A DNA stretch of 64,000 nt from Ginglymostoma cirratum (Eukaryota): contig JAHRHZ010000107.1 of assembly GCA_024137785.1 (NCBI GenBank), positions 124,001-188,000 of the forward strand, read 5' to 3'. This document shows positions 15,839-55,294 of the stretch, one piece after another. The position numbers were made by a program, and so were the translations under genes. The notes below the pieces were generated by a model, which made no database searches, was not told the origin of the DNA, and worked only from the letters and a program-made list of their open reading frames with translations. Numbering within the stretch: the stretch's first letter is position 1; each line of letters begins with the position of its first letter.

Positions 15839-15839
15839 T

Positions 15840-21935: not shown

Positions 21936-24224
21936 AATATTGATTTAGGATGAATTAGCTTAGGATCATTGGCGATTTTACTTCATGCCCCTAGTATCCA
22001 GATCAAAGATCTCTTGTGCGACTTGAACATTTTTTTCAGCTTCTCCAGCTACTTCAAAGCTTGTTCTCTGTGAAATTCTCGGTTTCATGTTCTTGAAGCC
22101 CTTAAAAAAGTCCTCGAACATTGTCAACTTGATTCAAAATGTTCCAGAGATTTTATGCAGGGGTATTGGTGTGGCCGGCCTTTTCTAAACATCTACATCT
22201 TCTTGGAGGTATCAGCCATGATATCAACAACTTGCACATTTCGTTATTTCCTGTTTGCTGTTTATCTCAGTTCACCAATTCCGATTTTATATGGTTGAGA
22301 GGAATCCTGACCAGAGACATTAATTTTAATCAAAAGTGTGGAATCTGTTTCTCGTGGATGGGTTCGCCCTAATTTTCAACTTTTTGTATCCTGAAGAGAT
22401 AATATTTAATAAGTATTGACGTTCCTGAAAAATGTGATCGCTGAACACAAGTGTGTACTATCAATGCAGATCTTAATCCATGGATTAAATTGTGTGTCTT
22501 TAAAGACTAACGATTATTTACGGTAATTGGTTCAGTTGGAACAGGATAGAGCGAGATAATTTTCATCATTGCTGGGTAGGTGCAAATGTTGTGGCTGTAC
22601 TGGAACAACTTGTTTCGTGGCATGGCAGATTTTGGAGCACAAGTGTTCAGTACAATTGTAGCAATGTTGTCAGGCCTCATAATCTTTGCAATATCCAGAG
22701 CCTCCAACCATGAGTCGAAACTGAACATTTACATCTTCGATTTCTGGGCGTCTGCAGAAGCAGAAATTTCAGAAGAAAGCTGACCACCTTCTCACGTGCA
22801 ACAAGGAAGGGGCACAATAGTTAGCTCAGCTGTGAGATCGACATCCCACGAATTAACATCAATTAGAAAAGAGGAGCACGCTAATTTTCAATCAACAGCA
22901 TCTTCAATGCGCATATTTCTTTTGACAGAAATAGACAGAAAGTACTTGAAATGACAAGAAGCACCAAGTTTACTTCTAAGCTTGCTATAATATCGCCACC
23001 CGTGTTCTCTCACTATTTTAAGAAGCTGTAATAGAATTTTCTGACAGAAATGTGGGATTTTCTCCTGATAGAATGAAGTACTTGAAGAAGATGTCATGCC
23101 AGTACTTTCTCAAGGCTAATTTTGGAACTGTAACATGACTTGCCAGTGTCGCTTATTTACAAAGATTCAAATAACAATGAATAAAAGCTTATTACTCTAT
23201 CTAAAAGAAGCCACTGTGTATTATGTGGCCAATATGCAACTTATGATAGCTAGCGTGCATTCTCTCCGTCAGGATCTGTTTGGTGACAAATTCTCAATCG
23301 TTATAATTTGAAAAGATTGTTCTGGACAGTAATCGATGTGAGGAAATACAGTTATTGATTGCAAGGGAGCGTGAAAGTAATGGCAATAAGAGACAAGAAA
23401 TGTGCTAGTTCCTTCTTTTAGTTCCCTTGTGATACAGAAACTTTGGGCTAAATGTGACTTTGGGGAGAACCCGACTGCTTATTGCGGTAAACACCGCAAA
23501 TATTGATTGGCTGAACTCCAGGTTGTATTTACTTGCAGAAAATTTAAACATTTGAAACTGTATGAATCCATTTCATGGATTGCTGTCGTTCAGCTTGTTT
23601 AATTGTGTTCTTTCATAAAATACAATGTATCAAGTCGTGTGCGTGAGGTCATGAGGGTCGTTATTACACAAAAGAACTTACATCTACATGGGAAGTTTAA
23701 CCGTCTCATGCCAACTGGAGAGCTTCACAAACAATGAATGTTTTTGTAGGGACTGCAGTGTCAGAAATATTCGTGGATACCCTGTTATAAACTCGGAGAC
23801 CAATTCTAAATATTATTTCCTTATCCATTTGGATATATATTTCTTGTTTAATATTCTTCCAGCAACATCCAGAATTGCTGACGCATTTTAGATTGCTCCC
23901 TGCAAGAAACTCTGTATTTGTTAAGAATTCTAAGCATTCCCGCGAAAGCCATGAAAACATTTTGGTTGGAATTGGTATCCAGGAATAATGAGTTGCCATA
24001 GATTCTGAATCGAGACAGATTTACGGGCGTTCTGGCGAAGATTTGAACTTTCCATGTAAACGTTTTTGTGGATTGACATAATGTTAGCTTTCTGTGTGCG
24101 CCTGACAAGTGGATGAATGGATTCTGATCGTAAATGCAGGAAAATTAGATCAGAATTATGAACCTGAAAAGCTGCCTATATTCACATACTTGAAATGAAC
24201 CTGCAAAATCTATCAATAAAAAAT

Positions 24225-26120
24225 CATAAGACCTTAAGATATAGGAGTAAGAATAAAGTCATTCAGCATATTCGAGTCTCCATTGTCATTTGATCATGGC
24301 TGATATGCTTGTCAACACCATTCTGCTGCCTTCTCCCGGTAACACTTGATGCTCTTATTAATTAAGACCCTCAGTCTCTCTTAAAACACTCAATGACTTG
24401 TGCCACATACTTCTGTGCTAATTCATTCCACAGATTCACCCCATTCTTACCGAAGAAGTTCCTCCTCATCTCAATACTAAAGGATTGTCCCTCCTTTCTG
24501 CGGCAATGCTTTCGGGTCGAAGTCTCTTCTCCAAGTGGAATTATCTTCTCCACGTCTACACTAAGCAAGCCTCTTAGTATTCTGTAAGAGTCAATGACAT
24601 CCCCCCTCATTCTTAAAATTGCATTGAGTCAGAGTAAAGGTCCTCAACTGCTCCTCATCTGATAAGCCACTCATCCCCTGGAATACTCTTATAAACCTCC
24701 TCTGAACCCCCTCCGATGCCAGCACGTCCTTCCTGAGGGACGGAACTCAAAACCGCTCACAATATTCCAAATGTGGTCTTTGTACACCCTCAGAGTTATA
24801 TCCCTGCTCTTGTATTCTCGTACTTTTGATTTGAATGCTAACCTTGCATTTACCTTCCTACTTGCCACCTGCATGTTCACCTTAAGAGGATCCAGAACTC
24901 GGATTCCCAAATTCCTTTGTGCTTCAGATTTCAGAAGTCTTTCTCCATTGAGTAATAGCCTCCGTCTCTATTCTTCCAGCCAAAATTCATAACCTCACAT
25001 TATATTCCATCTACCAGTTCTTTGCTATTCCCTCAGCCTGTCAAAGACCTACTGCAGCCTCCCTGCTTCCACATTACTTGCCCCTCGACTTATCTTTGTG
25101 TCATCTGCCAACTTTGTAAAAATGCCTTCAGATTCTTCATCTTGGTCGTTTATGAATAACGTGAATAGTTACGGTTCCAAAATTTATACCTGTGGAACTC
25201 CAATTAGCACTGGTTACCATCCTGAAATAGATACCTTTATCCCCACTCTTTGCCTTCTGCCAGTTAGCCAACCCTCTATTTATGGTCGTACATTCCCTCA
25301 AATACCAAGGCTCTTATCGTATTTCGCAGCCTCCTATTCTTGTCAAAACCCTTCTGGAAACCCAAATAGATCACATCCACTAGTTCTCCTTTGTCCAACT
25401 TACTGATTACCTCATCAAAGAATTCTAACAGATTTGTGAGACATGGCTTGCCAATGATGAAGCCGTGCTGACCCAGCCCTATTTTACCAAACACATACAA
25501 GTAGTCTGCAATCTCGCCTTGAATAATTGACTCTAAAATGTTACCAAAGACTGCGGTCAAACTTACTGGTCTACATTTTTCTGTTTTCCGACTTCCTCCT
25601 TTCTTAAACAGGTGTGTTACATTAAACAATTTCTAGCCCTCTGGTACCCTCCCAGACTACACTTATTCCTAAAAGATCATCACCAATGTCTCCATGATCT
25701 CCTCAGCTGTCTCCTTCAGAACTTTGGAGTTTGGCGCATCTGGTACGGGTGATTTATCCATCGTCTGACCAATCAGCTTCACCAGAACCTTCTCCTCAGT
25801 GATGGACTCTACACACACCCTTGTTCTTTGACTCTTTCGAAGTTTTGGTATATTACTGGAGTCTTCCACCGTGAGGGCTGTTGCAAAGCACCTATTCAGT
25901 TCCTGGGCATTTTTTTCGTCCTAATTACTGCTTCTCCAGCCTCGTTTCCCAGTGGTCACATGTTCATTCTTGCCTCTCTGTTACCTTCTATATATCTAAA
26001 AATATCTCTTGTCATCTTCTTTTGCATTACAAGTTAGATTAATCTCACATTTCATTTTCTTCCCCTTTTTGTTTGCTTTCCACTGCTGCTTTTAGAGATT
26101 TCCTTATCCTCTCGTTTCCC
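24225..26120 (-). mobile_element. Older CR1 LINE (continues at about 27730-28310 beyond the nested copy)
   Basis: Minus-strand ORFs with CRPVSLTA, QHGF..KPCLTNLLEFF and DKSPVPDA. Confidence 0.75.
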
Positions 26121-26123
26121 ACG

Positions 26124-27727
26124 TAAGACCATAAGACCATAGGACAGAGGAGTGGAAGTAAGGCCACTCGGCCCATCGAGCCCACTCAGCCATTTCATCA
26201 TGGCTGATGGGCATTTCAACTCCACTTACCCGCACTCTCCCTGTAGCCCTTGATTCCTTGCGAGATCAAGAATTTATCAATCTCTGCCTTGAAGACATTC
26301 AACGTCCCAGCCTCCACTGCGTTCCGTGGCAATGAATTCCACAGGCCCAACACTCTCTGGCTGAAGAAATGTCTCCTCATTTCCACTCTAAATTGACCCC
26401 CTCTAATTCCAAGGCTGTGCCCACTGGTCCTAGTATCCCCACCTAACGGAAACAACTTCCCAGCGTCCACCCTTTCTGAGCCATGCATTGTCTTGTAAGT
26501 TTCTGTTAGATCTCCCCTCAACCTTCTAAACTCTAATGAATACAATCCCAGGATCCTCAGCCATTCATTGGATGTTAGGCCTACCATTCCAGGGATCATC
26601 TGTGTGAATCTCCGCTGGACACGCTCCAGTGTCAGTATGTCCTTCCTGAGGTGTGGGGCCCAAAATTGGACACAGTATTCTAAATGGGGCCTAACTAGAG
26701 CTTTATAAAGTCTCAGAAGCACATCACTGCTTTTATATTCCAACCCTCTTGAGATAAATGACAACATTCCATTCGCTTTCTTAATCACAGACTCAACCTG
26801 CAAGTTAACCTTTAGAGAATCCTGGACTGGCACTCCCAGATCCCTTTGTACTTCGGCTTTATGAATTTTCTCACCGTTCAGAAAATAGTCCGCGCCTGTA
26901 TTCTTTTTTCCAAGGTGCAAGACCTCGCATTTGCTCACGTTGAATTTCAGCAGCCATTTCCTGGACCACTCTCCTGAACTGTCTAAATCATTCTGCAGCC
27001 TCCCCACCTCCTCCGTCCTACCTGCCTGTCCACCCAACTTCGTATCATCGGCAAACTTCGCCAGAATGCCCCCAATCGCTTCATCCAGATCATTAATATA
27101 TAAGGTGAACAGCTGCGGCCCCAACACTGAACCCTGCAGGACACCACTTGTCACCGGTTCCGAAAGACCATTCCAAAAAAGAGCCTTTTATCCCAACTCT
27201 CTGCCTTCTGTCCGACAGCCAATCCTCAATCCATGCCAGTAACTCACCTCGAACACCATGGGCCCTCACCTTACTCAGCAGCCTCACGTGAGGCACCTTG
27301 TCAAAGGCCTTTTGGAAGTCGAGACAGATACCATCCATTGGGTTTCCCTTTTCGTACCTACTTGTAACCTCCTCAAGGAATTCTAACAGGTTTGTCAGAC
27401 ACGACCTCCCCTTACTAAATCCATGCTGACTTGTTCTAATCCGACCCTGCACTTCTAAGAATTTAGAAATCTCATCCTTAACGATAGATTCTAGAATTTT
27501 ACCAACAACCGAGGTTAGGCTAATCGGCCTATAATTTTCCATATTTTGTCTTGATCCTTTCTTAAACAAGGGGGTTACAACAGCGATTTTCCAATCTTCT
27601 GGAACTTCCCCTGACTCCAGTGACTTTTGAAAGATCACAACCAACGCCTCTGCTACTTCCTCAGCCACCTCCCTCAGAACTCTAGGATGCAGCCCATCGG
27701 GGCCAGGAGGTTTATCAATTTTTAGAC
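26124..27727 (-). mobile_element. Young 5'-truncated CR1 LINE nested in an older CR1
   Basis: ORFs 27093..27668 and 26216..27154 (one frameshift) with YRPISLTS, CLDFQKAFDKV, GSVLGPQLF and FADDTK; (taagacca)n tail at 26124. Confidence 0.9.
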
Positions 27728-30700
27728 AGGTGCTTCATTTGTTGTAAGCTTTATGTTTTTCTTTTCTGCTGTCTCTGATTACCCTTGTCAGCCATGATAA
27801 CCTTGTCCTCCCCAGAGTATGTTTCTTCTTCCTTGGAATCAATTTCTGCTGTAACTCCTGAATTATCTCAGAAGCTCCAGCCATTGTTTCTCTAGTATCT
27901 TTATTCTATTCTTCCCATCCAGTACAGTCTGGTCAGCTCCTCCGTCATATCTTAATACCCCTCATATCAATTATAATGCCAAGACATCTGATTCAAGCTT
28001 CTCCCTCTCAAAATGTAGGCTGAATTACATCCTATTCTAGTTATTTACCTCGAGGAGTTCCTTTATTTGAGTTTCCAGTTCAGTCCTCCCCAACGGATAT
28101 CACCAAATCCAGAATTTCCTGCACTCTACTGGGCTGTACCACAAGCTGCACCAAAAAAAACCTCCTAGACATTGCATGAATTTCTTTCCTTGGGATTCGC
28201 TACCAACCTGATTTTCCCAGTCTGGCTGCATATTGAATTCCCCCAAGATTAGTGTAATTGTGCCTTTCTTACATCCCTTATGTGTTTCCTGATTTATTTT
28301 CTGCTCCAGACGTTATTGGCGTTATTGTTAGTGACAGCAACTTGAAGCCAATGAGGTGGATTTGAAACATAAGCAATAGAATTCTGTTCATTTAACTGGT
28401 CGATCCCAAGAGTAGCATAATCGTGTAGATACATCCTCCTCAGAAGTAAATCTGATGATTAGACAACCTATAATTATAAATCATGATCTGTGCCTCTTGT
28501 CATATTTCGCATACTGATCGTGGATCTGGAGCCAGGATTCAGACATTTCAATTTCACTAGTACACGACCTGTTACAAGGATCAACGAACCAAGATTTTTC
28601 TGATGTTCTCTCCTGCACGAGTTATTTGAAGAAAATGAGATTACCCTGATCCTTCCTTGTACTACTCCCTGCTTTCGAATGAGCTACCAGTCGCAAGAGA
28701 CTGAACATTAATAAATTGCCATTAATCTCGTTCTTAAACAAGCCTTTATTCTCTACCATATTTGCATGTTACACCTTCAGCACCTACGGGGATAGAATGA
28801 CTTGGGAGAGATCACGCTCGGGAATCATACACGAGATCAACACACCTTTGCAAGAAAATAGATGGGTTTCTTCAAATGCGTACAATTACTTGTACCAAAT
28901 ATTGCAATTTCTGCTGGAGAAAAACCATGTTCATCTGGAAAGGGCGCAATTGTACTCAAGACCAAATTATTCCAGGCTTTCCAGCGGCGGTGGAGCACGA
29001 ACACATTCGTGTTTCCTGCACTTTTCTTTCAATGTTATTCGATTAACTACACATCATGTTCGTGTTTTCTTATTCACATGAACATATCACTTAATTTATC
29101 CTGTAACAGTCAAGTTGTCAAATTAGGTTATCATTTTTTTTAAAATTATACCTAATTTTATCTGAACTTGGACGAGGGTCCATTTCTTTCCTCTTTGAAG
29201 AACACCTGTAACAAGCAGAAATCTGATGCCCATTCCTGGGGTGGCCCACTCACTTGTTAAACCCTGCAATAGACTTCTCAATGGTACTAGATTCTTAATA
29301 TTATACTTTATTTTAACTCCCACTTTCCAGCTTCCACGGATGACTCAGATGGGAAATACTTCAGGAATGTTGTCCTTGGGATAAACACATCTGCTGAAGA
29401 AGATAGATTGAAGTAGTTGCGCAATTCTGCTTAAGCAAGTTCAGTATTCATTGCTTGTCTTCTCACACTACCAACGGTTGGATAGAGTAGGCAAGGAGAA
29501 ACTGTTCCCTTTACTGAAGGGCCAAGAATCACAGGGTATAATTCAAGGTGATTGTGAAAATAATAATTCATGGCTTCAGGAAAAAGATGAGAATGATTAG
29601 ACCCTGGGACGCATGGTTTGAGAGTTTCATGGAAGCAGAACTATTCATGACTTTCAATGCAGAATTGATCATCATCAGAAGAGGCAAAATTTGCAGGGAG
29701 ATTTGAAGAATACAGCGTCGTGCAACGGGCTGAACCGCAGGGATAGAGAGCCTGCACGATTAAAACTGCGTTAAAGTGCTGCAAAGTTTTATGAAGAATG
29801 CTGCAATGGTTTATGAAATATGCCATGAGACAGGATTGTGTAGCTGCCTGTTGTGACTGCATGTATGATAGACTCCTTTAATCAAGGAATATTATTTCCT
29901 GAAAATTCTTTTGGTTTGTGATCAGATGCGAAAAATATCAATGTTTTTGATCAGATATGAAGACACTGAGTCTGTCTCTTTTGACTAGCTTTTTGATTTC
30001 AGAACTGTTGGAATAGATGTGACATCAAGTCTCATCATTTGGTTGATTCAACTGAAGTTGTGAGAAATTTGACAGAGTATTAATTAGTTCATAAATCTAA
30101 AAGAATCTTAGCGTACCGGCATGCCATGTCATTGAATTTACAAGATGCATTCCTCTGCAGATCCGGGAAAATGGACGAATTCTAGCACTATTCTTGATTC
30201 CTTTCGTGCCCCGACAACAATCAGTTTCAGTATTAGACATATTCAGTTGATTATACTGAGCTCTCTGAGTATCGAATTGCAATGATTAATCACTCCTGTT
30301 CGCTAAATATTTCCTCCCAGCACAGATGGAACTGATTGACATCTCAACATGACGAAATGAAGCCGTTTTAAGGCAGTTTAGACAGGTAAAATGCTCTAAA
30401 TATGTACACGACATTAATCTCTAAAATTTCTAGCCTTTTCAATTCGAACACCTCTCATTCTTCAAAACTGTGAAGAGTAAAGAATCAGTTTATTCTGTCT
30501 CACACAGTTCTACCTGTTAATGTATGAAACATTTCATCGAATATTTTTTGATTCCTTACTAAGGCATTGAGTTACCTGGCTTAATGCACCATGTAAAAGC
30601 CAAGTGTCCTATCAATGATCGTTCAAATGCCCTGTCATATGAGCTAAACTGGCAATGTCATGAAAAGATTAGGATTGGTCAAACACTTGCCCATGAAGCA

Positions 30701-31529: not shown

Positions 31530-32062
31530 GATAAGAGATAAAAGGTACTGCAGATGCTNNNNNNNNNNNNNNNNNNNNNNNNNNNNNNNNNNNNNNNNNN
31601 NNNNNNNNNNNNNNNNNNNNNNNNNNNNNNNNNNNNNNNNNNNNNNNNNNNNNNNNNNNNNNNNNNNNNNNNNNNNNNNNNNNNNNNNNNNNNNNNNNNN
31701 NNNNNNNNNNNNNNNNNNNNNNNNNNNNNNNNNNNNNNNNNNNNNNNNNNNNNNNNNNNNNNNNNNNNNNNNNNNNNNNNNNNNNNNNNNNNNNNNNNNN
31801 NNNNNNNNNNNNNNNNNNNNNNNNNNNNNNNNNNNNNNNNNNNNNNNNNNNNNNNNNNNNNNNNNNNNNNNNNNNNNNNNNNNNNNNNNNNNNNNNNNNN
31901 NNNNNNNNNNNNNNNNNNNNNNNNNNNNNNNNNNNNNNNNNNNNNNNNNNNNNNNNNNTTTCCCCGATGTAGAGGAAGCCACAACGGGTACAGCGGATGC
32001 AGTCCTGCTCCTATGATGCTGCTTGACCTGCTGTGTTCATCCAGCCCCATGCTTTTTATCTC
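31530..32062. mobile_element. Penelope-derived insertion with 15-bp TSD, containing a 400-N assembly gap
   Basis: Left end gagataaaaggtactgcagatgct and right end cctgctcctatgatgctgcttgacctgctgtg match the arms of 61507..61872; AGATTATCGAGCAGA at 31515-31529 and 32063-32077. Confidence 0.75.
31559..31958. other. Assembly gap (400 N)
   Basis: Run of exactly 400 N. Confidence 0.99.
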
Positions 32063-33244
32063 AGATTATCGAGCAGACCGCCTTTTAATAGACAATAGAC
32101 AGGCTTGGTCTGTATCCTCTGGAGTACAGGAGAATGACAGGTGACTTAATTGAAACATATAAAGTACTGAAGGGACTTGACTGAGAGAAGGTTGAATGAT
32201 GTTTCCTCTTGTGGAGAATCTAGAAAAAAGGGTCAAAGATTTTAAGACAGAGATGGGGGGTGGGGGAGTAATCACGAAGACATTTGTGTGTCGTTTGCCT
32301 TCTCTTCCACAAGGTCAGGGGATGCAGAATTTCAGAGCATTTGTAAGGAAAAGGCAGGTGGATTCTTGTTTTCAAGGGGATGAAAGATTATTGGGGGATG
32401 CAGGAATGTAGAGTTTTGGCAAAAATCAGATCAGCCATTATTTTGTTGAATTGTGTATCAGGGCTAGAAAGGGCCGACTGGCCTACACTTGGTCCTTGTT
32501 CACGTGAGCGCATGAACGGAATATGATCAGGAATAAGTTACATTTCGCTCAATTTCAACCAAGCAGCATCAAGATTTCCTGCGTCCCCTTCATTTCACCT
32601 CTGTTGTTTCCAATGTTCCACCGCAGGATTTTGATTCTAACTTTAAGCAGAAGGACAGATCCCAAATCACAATCTGCTGCAAACTGAGAATGGTAGAATG
32701 CGATATTGGAGACAGCTGACAGTAGTTGAAACTAAATCTGTAAGTGTGTTGATGGAGATGTTGGGCGGAGATGCAAGTCAGATGGGAATGTAAGCTAATT
32801 ATGAGTATTATTCGATGGAATAAGTCTCGAATGGGCTATACATAACACAGTGGAAGCTTGGGACAAAAGGCTGTTTGATGTATTCTTTGCCTTATACTTT
32901 TTGCAGTTCTGTTTAAAAAAAAGCAAACAAATTTTCAGCTGAAATCTGAGTGAATCACGGTCAGAAGATAATGACAAACTTGTTCAATAAACACTTTTGT
33001 ATTGTGCACACAAGAAGATGAGAAGAACACTGCAGTGTCTGAACAGACAGACAACAACTAACATTTTCAGATTAACACCAGCAATATAAAATTGTTATTG
33101 GAAAAATAATATGTTTCAAAGGTTATAATTCTCTTACTCTGAACGTTTTCGACTCCAATGCCTTGAAGTTAGTAGTTAAGAATCTCTTTATGATCTCACT
33201 GATTCTTCAAATTATTGACCTCATTCCATACTAGTTAAAATACA

Positions 33245-33850
33245 GAAGAGAGAGAAAGGGCTTGGTGAAGTGATGCAGTGAAAATAATTTGCCTCTCACC
33301 ATTGGCAAGACTAAAGAAATCATATTTGACTTCAGAAAGAAAGGAGGAGAACATGCCCCCATCTACATCAACAGAACTGAGGTTGCGAGAGTGAAGAGCA
33401 TCAAGTTCCTCAGGGTGACGATAACCGACGACCTGTCCTGGACTTCCCACGTAAATGTGACAGACAAGAAGGCAAAACAACGCCTCTTCTTGCGCAGGAG
33501 GCTCAGGAAATTTGGCAGGTCCATGAGATACCTCACAAACTCTACAGATGCACCATTGAAAGCATACTGTCCGTGTGCATAATGGCCTCGTTCAACAACT
33601 GCTCTGCCCAGGACCATAAGAAACCACAGAAGGCGAAGTGCACAGCTCAGGCCACCATGGAAACTAACCTTCCATTCATGGACTCTATGTAAATGGTTCG
33701 CTGCCCCAGAAAGGTGGCCAATATCATCAAAGACCCATCGCACCCTAGTAATGACCTCCAACAACCTCTTCCATCTGGCAGAAGATGCAGAAGCTTGAAC
33801 ACACGCAGAAGCCGGTTCAGGAACTGGTTCTTTCCGGCCTTTAGGAAGAA
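33245..33850 (+). mobile_element. Rex1/Babar-type LINE 3' region (tail resumes at about 35140-35310)
   Basis: KTKEIIFDFRKK..HAPIYIN..EVARVKSIKFL..ITDDLSW..KKAKQRLF..RRLRKF; (aatc)n tail at about 35296-35309. Confidence 0.7.
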
Positions 33851-33869
33851 ATAGCAAGGCATCCGGATA

Positions 33870-35139
33870 CAAATTCTACTGTTGGGAACACCCAGCATGG
33901 GTTCACGAAGGGTAGGTCATGTTTAACTAATTTGGTGAAATTGTTTGAGGACATTACTTGTGTGGTGGACAATGGGGAACCTGCGGATGTAGTGTATCTG
34001 AATTTCCAGAATGCATTTTACAAGGTGCCACACAAAAGTCTGCTACATAAGATAAAGTTGCACAGTATTACAGGTAATGTATTGATATGGATAGAGGACA
34101 TGGTTGACTTGTAGAAAGCAAAGAGTAAGGGCAAATGGATGTTTTTCTGTTTGGCCGTCAGTGGCTAGTGGTGTGCCTCAGAGATCAGTGTTTGGACGCA
34201 ACTGTTTACAATTTACATAGATGATTTGGAGTTGGCGACTAAGTGTGGTGCATATCTCTCTACAGAGAGATATAGGTAGTCTAAGTGAGTGGACAAAGGT
34301 CTGGCAGATGGAGTACAATGTTGATAAGTGTGAGGTCATCCATTTTGATTGGAATAACAACAAAATGGTCTATGTTTTAAATGGTAACAAATTGCAGCAC
34401 GCTGCTGTGCAGAGGGACTTGTGTGTCCTTGTGCATGAACTGCAAAAAGTGGGATTGCAGGTTCAGCATGTAATTAAAAATGCAAATGGAATTTGCCTGT
34501 CATTGCTAGCGGGATGGAATTTAAAAACAGGGAGGCTATGCTGCAGTTGTGTCTGGTCATGGTGAGGCCACGCCTGGAGTACTGTGTGCAGTTTTGGTCT
34601 CCTTACTTGAGAAGGGATACACTAGCACTGGAGGGGGTGTAGAGGAGATTCACTCGGTTGATTCCAGAGTTTAGAGCTTTGGATTATAAGGAGAGACTGA
34701 GTAGGCTGAAGTTATACTCATTGGAATTCATAAGAATGAGGGGAGATCTTATAGAAACATATAAGATTATGAAGTGAATAGATAGGTTGGAGGCAGGGAG
34801 GTTGTTTCCACTGGCAGGTGAAACTAGGACAAGGGGGAATATCCTCAAAATAAAGGAAGCAGATGTCGGACTGAGGTGAGGAGGAACTTCTTCGCCCAAA
34901 GGGTTGTGAATCTATGGAATTCCCTGCCCAGTGAAGCTGTTGAAGCTACCTCGCTGAATGTGTTTAAGGCAAGGCGAGATAAATTTTTGAACAGTAAAGG
35001 AATTAAGGGTTATGGTGTGAGGGCGGGCAAGTGGATCTGAGTCTCAAAAAGATCAGCCATGATCTTATTGAATGGTGGGGCAGTTTCGAGGGGCCAAATG
35101 GCCTACTCCTGCTCCTCATTCTTATGTTCTTCTGTTCTT
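33870..35139 (+). mobile_element. CR1 LINE RT/3' fragment nested in the Rex/Babar element
   Basis: DVVYLNFQNAFYKVPH, WQMEYNVDKCEVIHF, gagtactgtgtgcagttttggtctcc; tail ttcttatgttcttctgttctt. Confidence 0.8.
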
Positions 35140-36569: not shown

Positions 36570-37445
36570 GCAGAGGCACAGGGTTATCGAAGCATTCAGC
36601 GTGGAAACAGATCCTTCAGTCAAAGTTCTCTGCACCGACCAGGCATCCCAATCTGACTTAGCCCCATTTGTAAGCATTTGACCCATATCCCTCCAAACCA
36701 TTCCCATTCATATATCCAACCAGATGCGTTTTTCATTTTGTAATTGTACCAGCCTCCACGACTTTTCATAACAGCTCGTTCTATACGCACACCACCTTCT
36801 GTGTTAAGAAGTTACCCCTGAACTCCTTTATTTTAAATCTTTCCCCTCCAACCTTAAATCGATTCCCGCTAGTTTTGGACTCTCCCACCCGAGGAAAAGC
36901 ACCTGCGCTATTCACTATCCGTGCCCCTCATGATTTTATAAACCGCTCTAACGTTACCACCAAGCCTCCGATAGTCCAGGAAAAAAATAAGCCCCAGCCG
37001 ATTCCGCCTCTCTATATAACTCAAACCCTTCAGTTCCGGCAACATCTTTACAAATCTAATCTGCACGCTCTCTAGTTTAAGAAAAAGGCGAAAAGAATTT
37101 TACATGTTATTTTAAAAGCGGCTTAATGAACGTCCCATATAGCCGCAACATGACGCCCCAGCTCCTGTCCTCAATTTACTGACCAATGGAGGCAGTCGTG
37201 TCAAATGTCTTCTTCACCATTCTGTCTACCTGTGACTCCACTTTCAAAGAACTCTGCATCTGCACCCTTAGATCTTTTTGTTCAACAACACTCCCCACGC
37301 CCCTACCATTAAAGACCTGCCCTGATATGCCTTTCCAAAATTCATCACCTCACATTTGTCACTCCTTGACCCATTAGCTCATATGATCAAGATCCCGCTA
37401 GACTCTGAGATGATCTTCTACATTGCCCACGAGACCACCAATTTT
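36570..37445 (-). mobile_element. CR1 LINE 3' fragment
   Basis: ttgtaattgtaccagcctccacgact, tgtgttaagaagttacccct and ccgtgcccctcatgattttataaacc are CR1 motifs on the minus strand. Confidence 0.7.
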
Positions 37446-37673
37446 CAGAAGACTACAGCTGATTACATAAAGATGATATGACAATTTACGTTCCCAAAAT
37501 ATTCCCCAATCTAAAAATGTTTTACCAACCAATTTCATCTCCCAGTTCTAGACACAGTATTGCGTTCTTGTTCACTGAACTGGAAACAGGCTGATCAAAT
37601 GATTCTTGTACACAATTCAGTAAATCATCACCACGAACAGAACACGCAATGATACTCGAAATTTTGCATTAAA

Positions 37674-37860
37674 TTGCATCATATATTGTGCATCACTCAA
37701 TCAATATCCTGGAACATCTGGATGATTTTTGGCGATATTTGCAACAATGGATTTCTTGTGCTGGAGTGAAATAGTGTGCTGAGCTGGAGACACAGTGACA
37801 CAAGCCGCAGCATAAATCTTTCCCGCCGTTGTCTGTTTTACTTCTTGAACGTGATTTCAA
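37674..37860 (+). repeat. Perfect 187-bp copy of 40013..40199, containing an orphan IgNAR D segment (37779-37790) with both 12-RSSs
   Basis: No mismatch found by manual comparison at offset 2339; ATTTCTTGT-12-TAGTGTG [CTGAGCTGGAGA] CACAGTG-12-GCATAAATC. Confidence 0.93.
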
Positions 37861-38857
37861 ATAGATTAACCTTGAAATGGTCAACAGCCTTAGCCGCATC
37901 TCAGTAGACCAAAAGTAAGTTAAAACGTCATGTCATGAGTATTAACCGGAGCACTTCTGAGGAAGTATCACAGCATGAAACGATACCACTGGGAAATGTT
38001 TCCATCGCTTCACAACCCTGTCTACAAAGGCTTGTCTTCTGCCCCTCTGCTAAAGATTTTACATTTACACGTGTATAAACGGTTTCTGTTTTCCTCTTCT
38101 TCAACTTCTCTTTGCAAAGAGGTCCCACCTATTCAGAATTTCAAACAAGTTTATTACGTGAGCCAATTATGACAGTTCTTCGAACAAAGAACAGCTCAAA
38201 TTTAATATGCTCATCAAATCGCGATTTGTACATAGAAGTCGACATTCTCGTGAATCTCTGGTGCAAGCTCTGCAATCACAACCTTCAAACTCTTGCTTGG
38301 AATCGAATACTGAACTCTTGAAATATGTTATTTGGTCTTCAGGACCTCTTGTGATTTATAACTTGGACTGACATTTGTTGATTTAACAACAAGAAGAAGA
38401 ACTGGAGTTTCTTTTGATTCCTTTTAGAGTCGTATCAAGCTTAAAAGCTATTGTCAAAAGAATCCTTTCATATCAAAGCACCAAACCTCTGCCAATTCAA
38501 AGCATGACCATTGCCTTTTGTTTAAAAACTGCAACATTTCAACAATTAACAGTGACTTCCATGTGCTAATTGCTCCAATTTATCAGCTTTTAGATGTGTC
38601 CATGTCCATGATTTCGCTGTCTTAACATGATAAATGTTCCCAGAAATGAAATTAAAATATCACCAAGTTGAAACACAAGGAAATTAAGCAGATCTAATGA
38701 ACCCAGATTTGAAGAAATGCGGCATAGTTACATAGAAGTGTATTCTCCATTATACCAATAATCAGTTCATTCTAAATCGATGCAGATCCCCATAACGTGA
38801 CTAAGTTTAGAGGGCACAAAACTCAGCCCATCGCAACCCTGAGCTGTAATGAATGTG

Positions 38858-38911
38858 ATTGGTTTCTCGATCCATGGCATGCAAATAAACCCAGTCTCAC
38901 GAGGTTTATAA
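38858..38911 (+). promoter_or_regulatory. IgNAR V promoter: inverted CCAAT, octamer and TATA-like box
   Basis: ATTGG 38858-38862, ATGCAAAT 38879-38886, TTTATAA 38905-38911; about 90-140 bp upstream of the leader ATG, in Ig heavy-chain promoter order. Confidence 0.75.
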
Positions 38912-38999
38912 TGTCAGTGCTCCGAGACACAGAGTTCCACAGAGCAAGCGGTGTTGAAATCTGGATTTTGCTGTTTATAGTTCTATCGGTGCAGAAACA

Positions 39000-39042
39000 A
39001 TGAATATTTTCTTGCTTTCAGTCCTTTTAGCCTTATTACCAA
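39000..39042 (+). CDS. IgNAR: IgNAR leader exon (MNIFLLSVLLALLP)
   Basis: ATG at 39000, hydrophobic signal peptide, phase-1 donor A|GTAAGT at 39043. Confidence 0.93.
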
Positions 39043-39176
39043 GTAAGTGCTGTTTCATATCGATATTTATTTGTTTAAACTGTGCATCTGTGTTTACGTT
39101 ATTGTCATGCTCCTTTCTGAAAACTCTTCTATTGACAGATTAATGTCATGTATTAAATATGCCTTTCTCTGTCCAG

Positions 39177-39444
39177 ATGTCTTTCCTGCTCGAGTGGATC
39201 AAACACCGAAAACAATAACAAAGGAGACGGGCGAATCACTGACCATCAACTGTGTCCTAAGTGATACGAGCTGTGCATGGGACAGTACGTACTGGTATCG
39301 AAAAAAATTGGACTCAACGAACGAGGAGAGCACATCGAAAGGTGGACGATATGTTGAAACAGTTAACAGCGAATCAACGTCCTTTTCTTTGAGAATTAAT
39401 GATCTAACAGTTGAAGACAGTGGCACGTATCGATGCAGAGCATA
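39177..39444 (+). CDS. IgNAR: IgNAR V segment (VNAR), type III-like, unrearranged
   Basis: Acceptor ttctctgtccag; translation [43 protein letters not shown]...[20 protein letters not shown]; canonical Cys/Trp/Cys, no CDR2, extra Cys and Trp in CDR1. Confidence 0.97.
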
Positions 39445-39482
39445 CACAGTAATGAGCTTGATCCTTCGTCATGACAGAATAC
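39445..39482 (+). promoter_or_regulatory. V 3' RSS (22-bp spacer, 23 class)
   Basis: CACAGTA (39445-39451), 22 nt, ACAGAATAC (39474-39482). Confidence 0.9.
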
Positions 39483-39680: not shown

Positions 39681-39765
39681 TATTTTTGCACTGGGATGTA
39701 ACACTGTGATAACTTTACTGTGGATAGCACAGCAATGAATCTTTGATTCCCATAATACTGAAACC
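39681..39765 (+). CDS. IgNAR: IgNAR D segment 1 (coding 39709-39727, 19 nt) with 5' 12-RSS and 3' 22-RSS
   Basis: TATTTTTGC-12-CACTGTG [ATAACTTTACTGTGGATAG] CACAGCA-22-ACTGAAACC. Confidence 0.92.
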
Positions 39766-40089
39766 TCCCAACACCTTGGAGTCCACTATTGATGCAAATT
39801 ATTATTTCCATGCCAAAACACATCATGCTTAAATGCTCCTTGCAACTGTTAAAGACTGGCTGCTGCTGTGGAACGATATTCATACTCCTACAGTTGATTA
39901 TTATGTGAATGCCAAAATCATATTCACACTGCAATGTTGACAATTATCCAGCATTTGCTGAGTACCCAGAAAGTATAAACGTTGACTGGGAACACGATAT
40001 AAAGGGAATAATTTGCATCATATATTGTGCATCACTCAATCAATATCCTGGAACATCTGGATGATTTTTGGCGATATTTGCAACAATGG

Positions 40090-40157
40090 ATTTCTTGTGC
40101 TGGAGTGAAATAGTGTGCTGAGCTGGAGACACAGTGACACAAGCCGCAGCATAAATC
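40090..40157 (+). CDS. IgNAR: IgNAR last D segment (coding 40118-40129, 12 nt) with 12/12 RSSs
   Basis: ATTTCTTGT-12-TAGTGTG [CTGAGCTGGAGA] CACAGTG-12-GCATAAATC. Confidence 0.92.
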
Positions 40158-40470
40158 TTTCCCGCCGTTGTCTGTTTTACTTCTTGAACGTGATTTCAAT
40201 AATGAACTTTCTTGCTGATGGTTGCTGCTTCATCAAATTTAACATCAATTCTAGTTTGCCATTTTCTGGAATTCTCTACACATCCTCAGATGTAAACTCA
40301 GCATTGCTGTCTTTTCCAATGTTACTCACAGTCGCATTGGAGATGGGGGAAATGTGAATGAATTTATAACTGTCCATAAATGAGGATTAGTTCATGCTTT
40401 GAATGTATATGGGAGACATGAGAGAAGACGTGTCTTTAAATGTTTATAATATGACGGTTGCTTCACTGAC

Positions 40471-40509
40471 CTTTTTTAGGCAGCACTGATTGAGATCTGA
40501 TTGACTGTG
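40471..40509 (-). promoter_or_regulatory. J 5' RSS (22/23-bp spacer)
   Basis: GACTGTG heptamer 40503-40509; T-tract nonamer CTTTTTTAG(G) at 40471-40480. Confidence 0.8.
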
Positions 40510-40557
40510 ACAGCTTTGATGAATATGGAGGTGGCACGATCGTGACTGTAAATCCTG
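40510..40557 (+). CDS. IgNAR: IgNAR J segment (SFDEYGGGTIVTVNP)
   Basis: YGGGTxVTV J motif, phase-1 donor G|GTAAGT at 40558. Confidence 0.96.
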
Positions 40558-41559
40558 GTAAGTGACCTCCCTCGCTACAAATCGTTATGGTTTTGCTGAC
40601 AAATTACAAAAAGTCATAGTTCTCATTAAAACAGTTTGAACTGCATAACGTGATAACTGGAAGAATATTTTTTCATGGGCTCAGTTCGGTGTGCTGCCAA
40701 TTTATGTGCCTTAAATTTCAAGCTCATTTTCAGATTTCGTTGGAGCATGAGTATATTGCTAAATATATAATTCGGCTGGGAACAAGCCAATATTTCGACA
40801 TATAATCTTCTTGGCATGAAGAACCTGAGATGCTTACTTAAATAGATCATGGAGTTCAGCTGCTCCAAAGGAAACAGACAACGAAGTTATCCTGTACTTT
40901 GGCGTGCTAGTGTTTTACAGAAACACAGAGCTTTTCATTCGAACAGTTTAGGCAAGTCTGAATTGAGGAAAGCTTTATGCCAGCAGTAACGCTTTTTTGA
41001 ATTGCGTCTGAATGAAATGCAGAGGGGATGTCACATGCAATTAAAAATTGACAAGAGCTTCGACTGTAATATCGTTGATTTAATGGTAAATTCGCTGAAA
41101 ATAATTATAACTGTTTGAATGAGGTGGGGCCGAGTGTGTTTACACAATCTAATTTTAGTTAGTTTACCCGGTATCTTTAATAGCCATGAAAAGCTCGTTT
41201 TATTTTTGTGCAATGTCGTGTTTTGTAGTTACAAATGCAACTTTTTAAAAAATTTTTTACAAGCCTGCTTAAATGGATTTGACTTAAACATTGATAGGAT
41301 TATGTTTACCAGTACAGAGATGACTTGTTCAACTTGGAAAACTTTCTTGCAGACCAGTATCACAAGCGTCTGTCATTGGCTGCAAAGGGCTATAATTACT
41401 GCAAAGCAAAACTTCTGAAACATGACCCAATATCAAATATGAACTACTGCTTTCCACTTTGCCATAAAGATAATATGCAGCGAATTTCATTGAAGACTAG
41501 ATCAGTCCAGAAAGTGGCAAATAAAATTAACCCTGAGGAATAGTCTTCCATATAATACA

Positions 41560-41769: not shown

Positions 41770-42790
41770 GGTCCGGACAGTACTTGTACTCTTAATGGTA
41801 AGGCCCTGGGCAATGTTGTAGAACCGAGCGACCGAAGGGGTCAGCCATATAATTCTTTGAAATTTCCATCACTGATAGACAGAATGGTTAAGTAGTCGTT
41901 TAGCATGCTTGCCTTCAAATTGAGACCTTTGAGTATCGGACTTGAGACATCATGTTGCGGTTGTACAGATGGCAAGGCCTCCTCTGGAGTACTGTGTGCA
42001 GTTCTGGTCTCCCTGTTTTCGGAAGGATGCCATTAAACAGGAAAGAGTTCAGAAAAGATTTCCCAAGATGTTGCTGCGAGTGGCGGGTTGAGGTATAAAA
42101 ATAGACTAAAAAGACGATGACTGTTTATACTGAAGGGTAGGAGGTTGAAGCATCTTCTAGAATCATGAGGTACAATGCGAAGGAGAATGACACGGGCATT
42201 TCATTTCGGGTAGGTGAGTTCAAAACTAGTGGACCTACTTTTAAGGTGATTGGAGAAAGATTTAAAAAGGACACGAGGGAACAATTTCTTTCCACAGAGA
42301 GTGGTTCCTGTGCTAAATGAACTGCCAGAGGAAGTGACGGATGGGGGCACAGTTACAATGTTTCCATGACATTTTATACGTCTCTGAATAGGGATGGTTT
42401 GGATGCATACAGCTGAAATGGGCGGCAGGGTGGCTCAGTGGTTAGCAGAGCAGCCTCACAGCGCCAGTGTGCTGGGTTCGATTCCAGCCCCAGGTGACTG
42501 TCTGTGCGTAGTTTGCACATTCTCCCCGGGGTGCTCAGGTTTGTGCCCACAGTCCAAAGATGTGCAGGCTAGGTGGATTGGCCATGCTAAATTGCCCATG
42601 GTGTTTAGGGGGGTGAGTCTGGGTGGGATGCTCCAAGGGTCTGTGTGGACTTGTTGGGACGAAGGGCCTGTTTCCACTCTGTAGGGATTCTAATGAAATA
42701 CAGGCAGGTGGGGCTAGTTTAGTTGGGAACATGGTCAGTGTGGACTGGTTGACTTCAAGGGGTCGTTTCCATGCTGCATGACTTTCTGAC
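41770..42790 (+). mobile_element. CR1 LINE 3' fragment in the J-C intron (hosts a V-SINE)
   Basis: cttaatggtaaggccctggg, ggagtactgtgtgcagttctggtctccc, tttaaggtgattggagaaagattt. Confidence 0.75.
42420..42693 (+). mobile_element. V-SINE (HE1/MER6-like) with 6-bp TSD
   Basis: A box ggtggctcagtggttagc, B box gggttcgattcc, V-domain cccacagtccaaagatgtgcaggctaggtggattggccatgctaaattgccc; TGAAAT at 42414-42419 and 42694-42699. Confidence 0.85.
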
Positions 42791-48945: not shown

Positions 48946-49152
48946 GACATGGTTTGGAGCTCAAATCAAGGTTAAATATGACACCAATGTTGTGAACAGT
49001 GTCTTTCAGCATCATTGTATAATGATGTTATAATATGGCATAAACAGACGTTTTATGTAATACTTGAGAGCTATTGTTTCGACAGGACATCACAGAAGCA
49101 GTACAAGCGTCTATTCAGAAGGGAGTAAGTCTTTTCTTTGTTGTAATTCTAG

Positions 49153-49473
49153 GAGTACAACCGTCTCTACCAATAGTCAGACTCCTCTTCTCTGCAACTG
49201 AAGAACAGAGAGCAAACGGATTTGTGCAGCTGGTTTGTCTAATCAGCGGATACTACCCCGAAAACATTGCAGTGAGCTGGCAGAAGAACACAAATGCCAT
49301 AAGTTCTGGTTTTACAACTACATCCCCAGTGAAAACATCGAACAATGACTTCAGTTGTGCAAGTTTACTTAAAGTGCCCCTACAGGAATGGAGCAGCGGT
49401 TCTGTGTACAGTTGCCAAGTTTCTCATTCTGCAACCAACAGTAAACAGAGGAAAGAAATTAGATCAACATCCG
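49153..49473 (+). CDS. IgNAR: IgNAR constant exon C1
   Basis: Acceptor ttctag; GVQPSLPIVRLLFSATEEQRANGFVQLVCLISGYYPENIAVSW...EWSSGSVYSCQVSHSATNSKQRKEIRSTS; donor G|GTAAGA; 321 nt. Confidence 0.96.
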
Positions 49474-50384
49474 GTAAGAAAATTAAACAAACTCACAAGC
49501 CCAAATTAATAAAACATAAATACTTTCATTTTCAGTCTTGGGCCAGTTGAAATATTGTTATGGTGGCATGTTGCTGAGGATGAAACATTCTTGTACTGGG
49601 TACAGTGAGCGACACCAAGAGCACCTTAAGGTCGAGTGAAATGCCACGGTAAAAAATCAGTTGGAAATGATACAAGTATCCGCTCTTTCAAAAACATAGC
49701 GGAGCACAACATTCGAAACCATTTTCCTCTGCTCCCTGCAATTCTCGTTCTTAGTAGGAAAGAATTACTGGAATAAGGGAAGGCCTTGATGGAAGACAGA
49801 GGAAAAGAGACAGAAATATAGACATTATGAGGAAGTCGACAGAATGAAGGTGATTCTTTGGCAATCTTCTTATAATGACAGTTTAAAAAAAAAATTCTAG
49901 GCAGACTCGGTGTTAAGGACACTTTAAAAACCAAGCCAGCACTACGCATTGGCTAATTTACAAATTCAATCCAGGGCAGGAAAAATACCATTGCAATGCA
50001 TGCACTTCATCAGAAAGAATTCAACTTCAACAAGTCTGCTTCTCCTGCTGACACTAATATGAATTTACTGATTTCTATTGTTGTGTGATGCTACGCAATT
50101 GTAGAAAAGATGAATTGGGAGGACGATGTTCAGAGAAACTAAAGGGAGAGACAGAGGGTTCTGGTGGAAGAGAGACAGAAATTTGCTATTCGATGGGAAT
50201 CGACAGAGACAGCAAACATGCAGCAATATGCTGTGTTGAAGATATCTTTGCAGAAACCGTATTAAGGCTAAGACAAATAGGTTTTCTTGACCAGCAGGTT
50301 CAGTGACCTCACAGGGATAATGATTCTCAATAATCCACTGTGGTTAAAATTCATCGAACATCGTGGTGCGGTAGACTTTATCTG

Positions 50385-51425: not shown

Positions 51426-51439
51426 NNNNNNNNNNAAAG
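51426..51439 (+). other. 10-N assembly gap followed by the last 4 exon bases AAAG and donor GTAAGG (probably the end of C3)
   Basis: N at 51426-51435; AAAG|GTAAGG at 51436-51445. Confidence 0.7.
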
Positions 51440-51581: not shown

Positions 51582-54428
51582 AGAAACTTTAAAATGGACA
51601 ACACTTCTTGGAATGAAACAACTTTAAAACACAGCACACGGGTAGTAGATAGACAGAAGAATCGATAATATCGAACAAGTATGCCGCCTCAAGCAGTGTC
51701 ATTAACGCTCATATAAAGAATGGAGGGGTTGGCCCTCTTGTGGTCGAGTGGTAATATCGTTACCCCTGGGCCAAGAAGCCCACATTTAATTCTAGCCTGT
51801 TGCCGAGTTGTGTAATGACTTATCGAAACAGGTTGAAAGAGAAAAATAGGTTAGCTGAAAAATTATATTGAAAAAAGAGCTTCATTGCACAATTAACTCT
51901 TGAGAGTGAGCTATCTTTAGACAACAATGAATGAATGTGTTCACAAAATTTTGAATCGTGTTTGCTCCAGCCAACTGCTTGATGCTTCTCTTTTCAGTCC
52001 AGCTTGAGTGGTTGCTGACAGTCAACTAACAGGTACACCGAAATGCAACCTCACCAGTTAAAGAGTGGAACTCATGTTTCTTTGAATTATCATGTAGATT
52101 TCAAGCATCCTATTATTCAGTATGATTCCCTGTGATGGCGCAAAAAATGACGAATAATTCTGCTGTTGACATAAATAATTCATACAAACTCCTGAATTAG
52201 GTTAAATTCCTATTATCTGCTTAGTTCATTGATCTGAACGGATTTTGTTGTGGACCGTGGAACCGCCAATTTATGTCCGAAAGAAATGAACAACAAGGCA
52301 TCAATTTTTCAACACTGATCTCTGGTACACGGGTCTGTGATCAAGGGAACAGATTACTGGGCTGCAAAAACCTTCTGTCATTCACTTACCGATAATCATT
52401 GAATAAATTTGCGTGAAACACTAGCTGAGGTCACAAAGGGATGCCAGCAAATCACATACAACAGTGAAAAAGAAGAAAGATGAATCTGAGCAAATTCTGC
52501 CCACAGATGCAGTCACAAACATTGATCAGGAAAAATTCCGTTTGTTGAGCACCCATGCACTGAAATAACAAACTACCAGAAGCCCACGCATTGATTTCGG
52601 ATTGTTGAAGATTCTTTGAAAGTTGAACTGGGATAGACTTATATGAGTTATATACAATCCCTCTGAGGGGTCTTGGTGGAAATGAACGTATAGTGCTCTT
52701 GCAAAGGTCAGGGCCGAATGGGAATCTTAGTCACTTGCTGTAGAATAGGCTACACATTTTTTTTTCCTTGTTGAATAACTAAGACTGTTCAGTCAAGACA
52801 AGATTCCTCAAAGACATTTTAACACCACCTTATATCAATATGAAATGTCACTTTCTTTTCTACAGTGATGGAAGAAATTCACTTGAAATTGTGCTAATTT
52901 TCAGTTTAGAATTTCGGGGTGGGGGAAGATTTCCCTATTAAAATCATATCGTCTGTACACAGAACATTTTGAAATTTAAAAAGCCATTGTTAAATCTTCG
53001 ATTTCGGTTTTTAACACGTGCACAAGATTCATTTCAACGCGATCAGTTTTCTCACAGCATCATTTCTCCGCCCCAAGTTCAGTTTTACTACTGAGAAGAT
53101 ACTACGTTTTGAACATGCAGTTATCATCAAGGCTCTTCAGATGGAACTGATCTTGTAACATAAAATATGTCCACATTATATAATCAAGAAATTATAACAT
53201 AGTCTGACTGTGCTCAGGTTGCCAACCCACAAATTCACGTTAACCGTCTGTCAGGTTGAATGGAAAGTCGGTGGAAGACATTAAATCAGGAAAGCCAGAG
53301 ATAATCAAGTATTCAGACTGAAAGTTTGGAATGCGAGCCAGTAGTATTTATCAACACAGGAGTAGTTTCTGCAATTTTTCTCCCCACCCATCAAACCTAG
53401 TATCACTGAAGAAATGCAAAAGTTTTACGAAATGCAAACAAAATAAAATGATTCGATTCGAAATGCATGACAGACACGGAGCATCCGTCCTCACAAGAGA
53501 TGTTAGAAATTGTAGAGTTCACAGTTTCTACAAATATGACAAAGGCTGTAACATTTAGAGTGACAATACAAGCAAAATATTCAAGAATCTTCTTTTCATT
53601 TGTTTTTTTTTCCATTATGCACAAAGAAAGTAAATGTAACTGTATTAAAAACGACCATTTTGCTTTAAAAACCTAGAAGCATGCTTTCCCACGTCTTATA
53701 CGTCCCTTCAACGTTGGCAAAATACCGACAGCTGTGAGTTTTGACTTTTCTCAGTATTAAAGTTGAGATGTCAGAGATACGAGCTGACAATATTTTAAAT
53801 TGCCTCACTTCACACTCTTAAAATAATAACTATTGCAACACCCATCATCAGAGAACGCCCTGACCTGACCTGAATTGTGCAGTCAGAATCTCTTTTTTAA
53901 AATAAAAGATTCTGCCGAGGAAATAGAACAACACAATCATGTCAAAGGGTGCAAACGATCAAAATACATAATAACATCAGGGGAATTTCTCCATTCGTTG
54001 GTCGGATGCGGTGAAAATAACTTTAGTTGTGGAATAGGGGATATTTATGACATGTTTTTCCTCATCTGCTATTGTATTCTGACAAATGCAGTCCAGGCTG
54101 CAGCAACTATCTTCTGGCATCAATAACTGCAAAACGTAAGCGTGTGCAACACCAGAGCAGAAACAATTAGGCCCCGGTATGCCCAAGTCAGAACAATTTC
54201 CAAATTGTGCAATAACATATTGCAAATATTACCAAAGGAGCATCCACAGCAGGCACAGCGAATGAAAACAACGTGAACAGGAGGACACAGCATCTAATTA
54301 ACTCAGCCGAAACAATCTGAGAAAGCAGATAACAGATTGCAGTAAGTAAACTTATTCCCACCTCTTGTAGTATTTTGTAATTTATTTCAAGATTGCAGCC
54401 TGAAAAATGTGTTCCTTATTCTTTCCAG

Positions 54429-54749
54429 TTGATTGCCGTCAGACAGACATTTCTGTCAGTATACTGAAGCCTCCGTTTGAAGAGATTTGGACACAACAGA
54501 CAGCGACCATTGTTTGCAAAATCGTTTACAGCGACTTAGAAAACATCAAAGTTTTCTGGCAAGTGAATGGGGTTGAGAGAAAGAAAGGAGTCGAGACGCA
54601 GAATCCCGAGTGGAGCGGAAGTAAATCCACCATTGTGAGCAAACTCAAAGTCATGGCGTCGGAGTGGGACAGTGGTACCGAATATGTTTGCTTGGTAGAA
54701 GACAGTGAATTGCCAACACCAGTGAAAGCCTCTATCAGGAAGGCAAACG
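54429..54749 (+). CDS. IgNAR: IgNAR constant exon C4
   Basis: Acceptor ctttccag; VDCRQTDISVSILKPPFEEIWTQQTATIVCKIVYSDLENIKVFW...EWDSGTEYVCLVEDSELPTPVKASIRKAN; donor G|GTAAGT; N-terminal extra Cys as in known IgNAR C4. Confidence 0.96.
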
Positions 54750-55294
54750 GTAAGTGGGGATAATACTGCAATAAGAACAAAAAGAATGGATGCCTGAAAT
54801 CTGAAATGAAAGAAGGTGCAGTAGAAATTGAGCCGGACTGGCTGAATCTGTGGAGATAGAAGGAGAATGAACCTTTCCAGTCCAGTATGTTTCCTTCCAG
54901 AAAAGGGTTGTGAATGTTACTGTTGAGATAAAACTGGCTCATTGTCTTATCCAATGTATAAATATTTTTGCAAATCAACGTTTTTTCTTTTGCATTAAAT
55001 GACCAGAAGACTAACAGTTCTGGCTCATGCCGTTCTGCAAAAGTATGACAACGAGCATGATGACCTATGAGTAGCTGAATCATTTGCACCCTTAGAGCGG
55101 CAGTCCTTTCAAAAATGTGATGCTCTGCAAGATCGAAACTACCACTGAAGTGACATAACGTTCTCGAGCATTCAGAGATATTTGTACAGTCTTACAGATC
55201 GGAAATATTTTATCAAGCACATGCATTACTCGCAAAGAAATTCTGATGCAGATATAAGACTGTCTGAGTTAAACAAATATCTTTCTCTTTGCAG

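Follow-up and report, generated by a model that had tools for sequence, protein, structure and literature searches.

The kappa-deleting element (KDE/RS) and deltaRec are lone RSSs that have been kept across species and whose joins are documented in lymphocytes. In the mammalian TCR alpha/delta locus, the deltaRec-psiJalpha join removes TCRD. Ig orphons, gene segments that have left their functional context, usually lie on other chromosomes and are decayed.

The element analysed here, an extra D segment with both of its RSSs located upstream of the promoter of a shark IgNAR cluster (the orphan D, carried by the orphan copy), can be compared with all of these. As in KDE/RS and deltaRec-psiJalpha, its signals lie outside the V-to-J order, and a join between the orphan 3' RSS and J would remove V. 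Unlike them, the orphan copy consists of a full D, two RSSs and incidental flank, is absent in a related species and has not diverged from its source. With the Ig orphons and the cryptic RSSs it has in common that a segment or signal outside its functional context can draw RAG into non-productive events; in contrast to the orphons, it is intact, identical to a working segment and placed within the same 3-kb recombination unit. In a literature search that covered mostly papers available outside subscription, neither a D located upstream of V nor a deleting element turned up for any shark cluster.

The cluster in question has the features of type III IgNAR, which is defined by an extra CDR1 Cys beside the conserved Trp and an extra CDR3 Cys. 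In nurse shark type III the D1 and D2 segments are germline-fused, and type III IgNAR has been reported as neonatal (PMC4622739).

A complete IgNAR cluster with type III features

The window (the whole 64-kb stretch of DNA analysed here) carries a complete IgNAR cluster with type III features, all of it on the + strand. A promoter octamer, ATGCAAAT (38879-38886), followed by a TATA-like TTTATAA, precedes the leader exon (39000-39042), which was recognised both from its sequence and from a spliced RNA contig that skips the 134 nt between leader and V, from about 39038-39042 to 39173-39177. The V exon (39177-39444), whose CDR1 reads ...SDTSCAW, had an IgNAR V, PDB 2i26, as its best PDB match (E 8e-43) and also matched Pfam V-set, and the open frame holding the C1 exon (49068-49547) matched PDB 4q97, 'Novel antigen receptor' (E 3.6e-57), and Pfam C1-set. 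Both the V domain and the C1 exon thus place the locus in IgNAR, and these matches bear out its identification as a V-D-D-J cluster of this family in the preliminary description.

The V RSS (39445-39482) reads CACAGTA, a 22-nt spacer and ACAGAATAC. It is followed by a germline-joined D1-D2 (39681-39765), in which a coding segment of 19 nt, ATAACTTTACTGTGGATAG (39709-39727), has a 12-RSS on its 5' side and a 22-spacer RSS on its 3' side, and then by the D3 region in its normal place (40013-40199), the donor copy, where a 12-nt D, CTGAGCTGGAGA (40118-40129), lies between two 12-RSSs (40090-40117 and 40130-40157). J has its 23-RSS at 40471-40509, its coding sequence at 40510-40557 and a splice donor GT at 40558. 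This arrangement agrees with the duplicated D with 12-RSSs on both sides that had been described before; V, the first D (on its 3' side) and J carry 22/23-RSSs. Neither a second V-like frame, in an Ig-motif scan of all window open frames of at least 75 aa, nor a second copy of the cluster, by self-comparison of the cluster, was found in the window.

In keeping with type III, CDR1 has a Cys next to the Trp, and the extra CDR3 Cys is present as well: D1D2 encodes TGT, and the rearranged RNA contig described below translates to CRAYLYCGAELDSFDEY. The single 19-nt D, with its 12- and 22-spacer RSSs, corresponds to the germline D1-D2 fusion. At this place, contigs of the related species contain 269 extra letters (at 39711|39715, inside D1D2), the size expected for two RSSs plus spacer, which directly shows that the D1-D2 germline fusion is present in the source lineage only. 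In this respect the cluster resembles the germline-joined shark Ig genes that are products of germ-cell RAG activity, and it matches the published type III arrangement (PMC4622739).

Several other features of the region were noted. A perfect octamer, ATGCAAAT, is present at 39792-39799, between D1D2 and D3, and another, ATTTGCAT, at 40011-40018, about 100 bp upstream of D3, where it coincides exactly with the left boundary of the duplication; at the corresponding edge, the orphan copy carries AATTGCAT. Both octamers may act as promoter elements associated with the Ds. With the 75-aa cut-off, the C1-set frames numbered only three (49068-49547, 54404-54760 and 55273-55674). The assembly has gaps of 400 N at 31559-31958 and of 10 N at 51426-51435, the latter among the C exons, and some C exons may fall below the 75-aa cut-off or be affected by the 51426-51435 gap. 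Two diverged inverted-repeat pairs (36831-37312 and 41792-42267), 71-76% complementary, bracket the V-D-D-J unit; their depths of thousands in every run and their LINE-tail-like ORFs identify them as interspersed repeats. Reverse-transcriptase-like open frames, with motifs read by eye, occupy a large part of the 37 kb that precede the cluster (12662-15861, 20514-21982, 24374-27734 and 33238-34562).

D3 is rearranged at its normal site

Contigs from the runs of organism A, which are small and RNA-like, were compared with the window. Two of them, each of 151 nt, matched non-coding spacers of the window perfectly, which points to organism A as most likely the source species. A rearranged RNA contig from run X2, with a depth of 277, runs from the V end, using position 39444 exactly, through 22 letters with D1D2 and D3 sequence and into J, and it reads in frame (CRAYLYCGAELDSFDEYGGGTIVTVNP in translation). 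A J-to-C1 splice is also seen in an RNA contig; its overhanging end, once translated, gives the beginning of the C1 frame in the window. Since this rearranged, in-frame transcript uses D3, the D3 RSSs are functional at their normal site.

Note that a single CDR3 sequence was seen at depth 277, as one contig and with the germline D1D2 fusion unchanged, in agreement with published accounts of a restricted, canonical type III CDR3. In its V part, the abundant spliced leader-V contig was about 2% different from the window, so the transcripts may derive from an allele or a sister cluster. Over 40028-40231, other organism A contigs differed from the window at 8/204 and 14/204 positions. We take these for alleles or sister clusters of organism A, and differences of this number show that the D3 stretch is without strong constraint.

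The D3 region has a second copy upstream of the promoter

Self-comparison of the 64-kb window revealed that positions 37674-37860 and 40013-40199 are identical at all 187 of 187 bases. Both copies read in the + direction, at a distance of 2339 bp from each other. This reproduces the 187-bp identity, same orientation and position about 1.1 kb 5' of the leader that had been noticed previously. When the comparison was extended outward, to 37670-37860 against 40009-40199, one mismatch was found in 191 positions (37673 a vs 40012 t). From the end of the orphan copy it is 1019 bp to the promoter octamer (38879) and 1140 bp to the leader ATG (39000).

Within the orphan copy, the 5' 12-RSS occupies 37751-37778 (nonamer ATTTCTTGT at 37751-37759, a 12-nt spacer and heptamer TAGTGTG at 37772-37778), the D coding segment of 12 nt, CTGAGCTGGAGA, occupies 37779-37790, and the 3' 12-RSS occupies 37791-37818 (heptamer CACAGTG at 37791-37797, a 12-nt spacer and nonamer GCATAAATC at 37810-37818), again on the + strand. 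Both RSSs flanking the 12-nt D are thus intact and of the 12-spacer type, and outside the nonamers the copy has another 77 nt on the 5' side and 42 nt on the 3' side. A search of the 64 kb for a third copy of the 187-bp stretch gave none, so that there are two copies in total.

The 400-bp flanks of both copies, on either side, align no better than shuffled sequence. The duplicated stretch is therefore an isolated patch and not the core of a larger and older duplication, a candidate that we rejected on these scores.

The upstream site is empty in a related shark

To compare the locus with that of a related shark (organism B), we used whole-genome contig sets from two samples. These are about 6-7% different from the window, a divergence that agrees with their 0.12 share of 31-mers, and a single locus in them is at least 90% similar to the window. 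In both samples the upstream site was empty, the contigs reading ...37673, AGG, 37858.... One contig is 1974 nt long and runs from 37329 to 39482 at a depth of 13.8, and the other is 906 nt long and runs from 37312 to 38365 at a depth of 15.5; both depths are those of single-copy sequence, and the breakpoints fall precisely at the repeat ends. Organism B does have the D3-side copy, in a contig that covers 39715-41000 unbroken. The empty upstream site, together with the presence of the D3-side copy, makes the upstream copy the derived one and fixes the direction of copying. As read from these sequences, the upstream copy is a derived insertion that replaced AGG, with a net length of 184 bp (37674-37857), since the CAA at 37858-37860 is common to the target site.

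Among the organism A contigs, several are 4-10% different from the window, and the differences are ones that organism B has as well. The organism B locus may accordingly correspond to the ortholog of a sister cluster and not of the window cluster. This possibility makes the absence in organism B weaker as a test of conservation; the insertion call is unaffected by it. Conservation is what would be expected of a locus-deleting RSS element, and here the site was empty in two organism B samples, at a locus possibly belonging to a sister cluster. Measured against the refuting condition of the preliminary description, in which absence from relatives marks a neutral duplication, the result leans toward a neutral duplication and away from the functional element that had been proposed.

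In the source species, the assembly is the only record of the insert and of both its junctions; the RNA-like contigs of organism A have no depth over 37670-37937. Another possibility could be that the germline has the empty site, and that the 184-bp copy is the product of a chimeric read, of polishing or of gap filling, or else of a somatic molecule that was rare in the sample. The perfect identity between the copies and the presence of gaps in the window (31559-31958 and 51426-51435) are compatible with such an artefact, and a low-depth source contig from run X1, identical to the window, stops within about 1 base of 37673, which could reflect an empty-site allele or chance. This contig spans about 37494-37674, with its end point taken from bin-depth arithmetic, and it matches the window at 37563 and 37575. 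However, an assembler would need reads bearing both new junctions, and the copy lies in unique sequence and not beside a gap. Moreover, the breakpoints agree to the base with the empty site of the related species, the AGG replacement resembles a biological repair scar, and no V(D)J pathway gives an intact RSS-D-RSS insert. We consider an artefact unlikely.

Age of the copy

The flanks of the insertion differ from organism B at 14/345, 113/1625 and 77/1286 positions (4-7%). If the two copies were as old as the split from organism B, about 12 differences would be expected between them at 6.5%, and 0/187 were observed. Zero divergence between the copies, against 4-7% in the flanks, indicates either that the copy is young or that its identity has been kept by conversion. 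The preliminary description had left recent origin, gene conversion and mis-assembly side by side as explanations of the perfect identity. The empty site and the 0/187 differences favour the first of these, and the other two survive as low-rated rivals.

Conversion is documented among shark immune-receptor exons, namely in the UrIg2 C domains (PMC12227049), and the two copies, in direct orientation and only 2.3 kb apart, could have been kept identical in this way since an older duplication, with their age and any function masked. Nevertheless, the site is empty in the related species, the identity breaks off abruptly at either end, without decayed homology further out, and an island of 187 bp is a poor substrate for long-term conversion. 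We regard this explanation as very unlikely. Altogether, we put at about 60% the probability that the orphan copy is a real, evolutionarily young, lineage-specific germline insertion that is probably neutral or mildly harmful and has not been selected.

How the copy probably arose

In the scheme that we propose, a stretch of 184-187 bp with the last D (the D3 equivalent) and both its 12-RSSs would have been copied from 2.3 kb downstream. The copied stretch would then have entered a break 1.1 kb upstream of the leader and replaced three bases (AGG), most likely through template-switch or synthesis-dependent break repair, a mechanism that we infer from the scar. What is seen at the locus is what a templated insertional duplication leaves: a donor in cis, 2339 bp downstream, an empty site with AGG, and, at the right junction, a 3-nt microhomology (CAA) common to the donor end and the target.

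The orphan copy resembles templated insertions of the SDSA, FoSTeS/MMBIR or polymerase-theta type in its short cis donor, its direct orientation and the lost target bases, as well as in having a 3-nt microhomology at one junction and no target-site duplication, none being visible at the insert by comparison with the empty site of organism B. It differs from them at the left junction, where inspection of both copies and of the empty site gave no clean microhomology, and the scar is all from which its mechanism can be read. The motif TTGCAT had been noticed twice at this junction (37664-37669 and 37674-37679) and suggested as a microhomology that templated the insertion. The motifs are indeed present, but they are split by TAAA, lie 4 nt apart and off the junction, and priming from TTTGCAT would give a different junction; the templating role was therefore rejected.

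Other origins were also tried. RAG transposition would produce a heptamer-bounded insert with a target-site duplication of about 5 bp. Here both RSSs are intact, the ends lie 77 and 42 nt outside the nonamers, no target-site duplication is present and AGG was lost, and RAG cutting or transposition was rejected on these grounds. Since the insert ends lie well outside the RSSs, RAG was not the copier; with such ends and with both RSSs intact, the orphan copy differs from the germline-joined shark Ig genes, being no RAG product. A transposable element was discarded on the finding of two copies only in the 64 kb and no target-site duplication, and a tandem duplication because the intervening 2152 bp are present once.

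Predicted joins of the orphan D

For the orphan D there are six 12/23 pairings, and we re-derived each of them from the types and orientations of the RSSs. The orphan 3' 12-RSS and the J 23-RSS are convergent signals, and their pairing deletes the promoter, the leader, V and both Ds. Pairing of the orphan 5' 12-RSS with the V RSS or with the D1D2 3' RSS keeps the signal joint on the chromosome and circularises out the promoter and V. In the three same-orientation pairings, the V region is inverted. The earlier claim that no single-step outcome is productive therefore holds, each of the six pairings deleting or inverting the promoter and V. The geometry is that of a locus-deleting element, in that a 12/23 join would remove an essential part of the cluster and the identical RSS is used at the donor site.

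To RAG, the orphan D would look just like the working D in its RSSs, in its coding flank and in the neighbouring sequence over about 60-100 bp. Given this identity, it should be a competent 12-RSS partner of the 23-type RSSs of J, V and D1D2 when the cluster is open. In mouse loci, linear RAG scanning uses only complementary RSSs in convergent orientation (PMC13190342). By analogy with this rule, the most favoured event would be the deletion that joins the orphan 3' RSS to J, with loss of the promoter, V and both Ds. The orphan D may serve as a decoy for RAG, at the cost of some futile rearrangement attempts; we put the odds that it is cut by RAG at all at about even. No orphan-D join, from about 37790 to about 40510, was seen in the RNA contigs of organism A, which have no depth over the orphan copy.

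Discussion

The geometry described above raises the question of whether the orphan D is an evolved cis-acting inactivator, comparable to the kappa-deleting element or deltaRec-psiJalpha, in which RAG would join the orphan D to the J or V RSS. The cluster would be shut down in this way, for instance once the neonatal period is over, or as part of exclusion among clusters. This proposal gains from the fact that promoter and V are either lost or inverted in every 12/23 pairing of the orphan, that RSSs of identical sequence are in use at the donor site, and that V has the features of type III, which is reported as neonatal (PMC4622739). However, the nearest homologous locus of the related species is without the copy, and at zero divergence selection has had no time to leave a trace. 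In addition, a complete D that brings along two RSSs and 140 bp of incidental flank resembles an accidental copy and not a trimmed signal, and shark clusters are generally thought to be silenced by staying unopened, not by deletion (PMC5192425). An evolved inactivator is extremely doubtful, and the role like that of the kappa-deleting element, put forward in the preliminary description, is not upheld: the site is empty in organism B, the divergence is zero and there is no sign of conservation or selection.

In a further reading, the orphan D could be a newly born self-destruct substrate that is joined at a rate comparable to that of D3-J, and that measurably limits or times out the expression of type III IgNAR. 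When a developing B cell opens the cluster, the orphan 3' 12-RSS would be joined to the J 23-RSS, or its 5' counterpart to the RSS of V, and the promoter and V would be lost. We attach little probability to this; if true, it would mean that we see a deleting element as it first arises, in a locus of the cluster type, for which no such element is known.

Our preferred reading remains the insertion. Most likely, a young templated insertion brought a D with both of its signals intact to the upstream side of the V promoter, where it is probably neutral or slightly costly. As such, the orphan copy is a structural curiosity that adds one more case to a known class of events; its main interest is as a test substrate provided by nature. 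The insertion and the D1-D2 germline fusion together indicate that this IgNAR locus has been recently remodelled. The orphan copy is also a warning for annotation, as a perfect D with its RSSs is not always part of the coding array.

Finally, if the copy is real, it provides a natural experiment, in which an RSS-flanked D that is base-identical to a working one lies outside the V-to-J interval and upstream of the promoter. The frequency with which the orphan D is joined would reveal how far the RAG-accessible zone extends in a shark mini-cluster, and would also test the preference for convergent signals there. Both the accessible zone and the convergent preference bear on how sharks exclude their many clusters.
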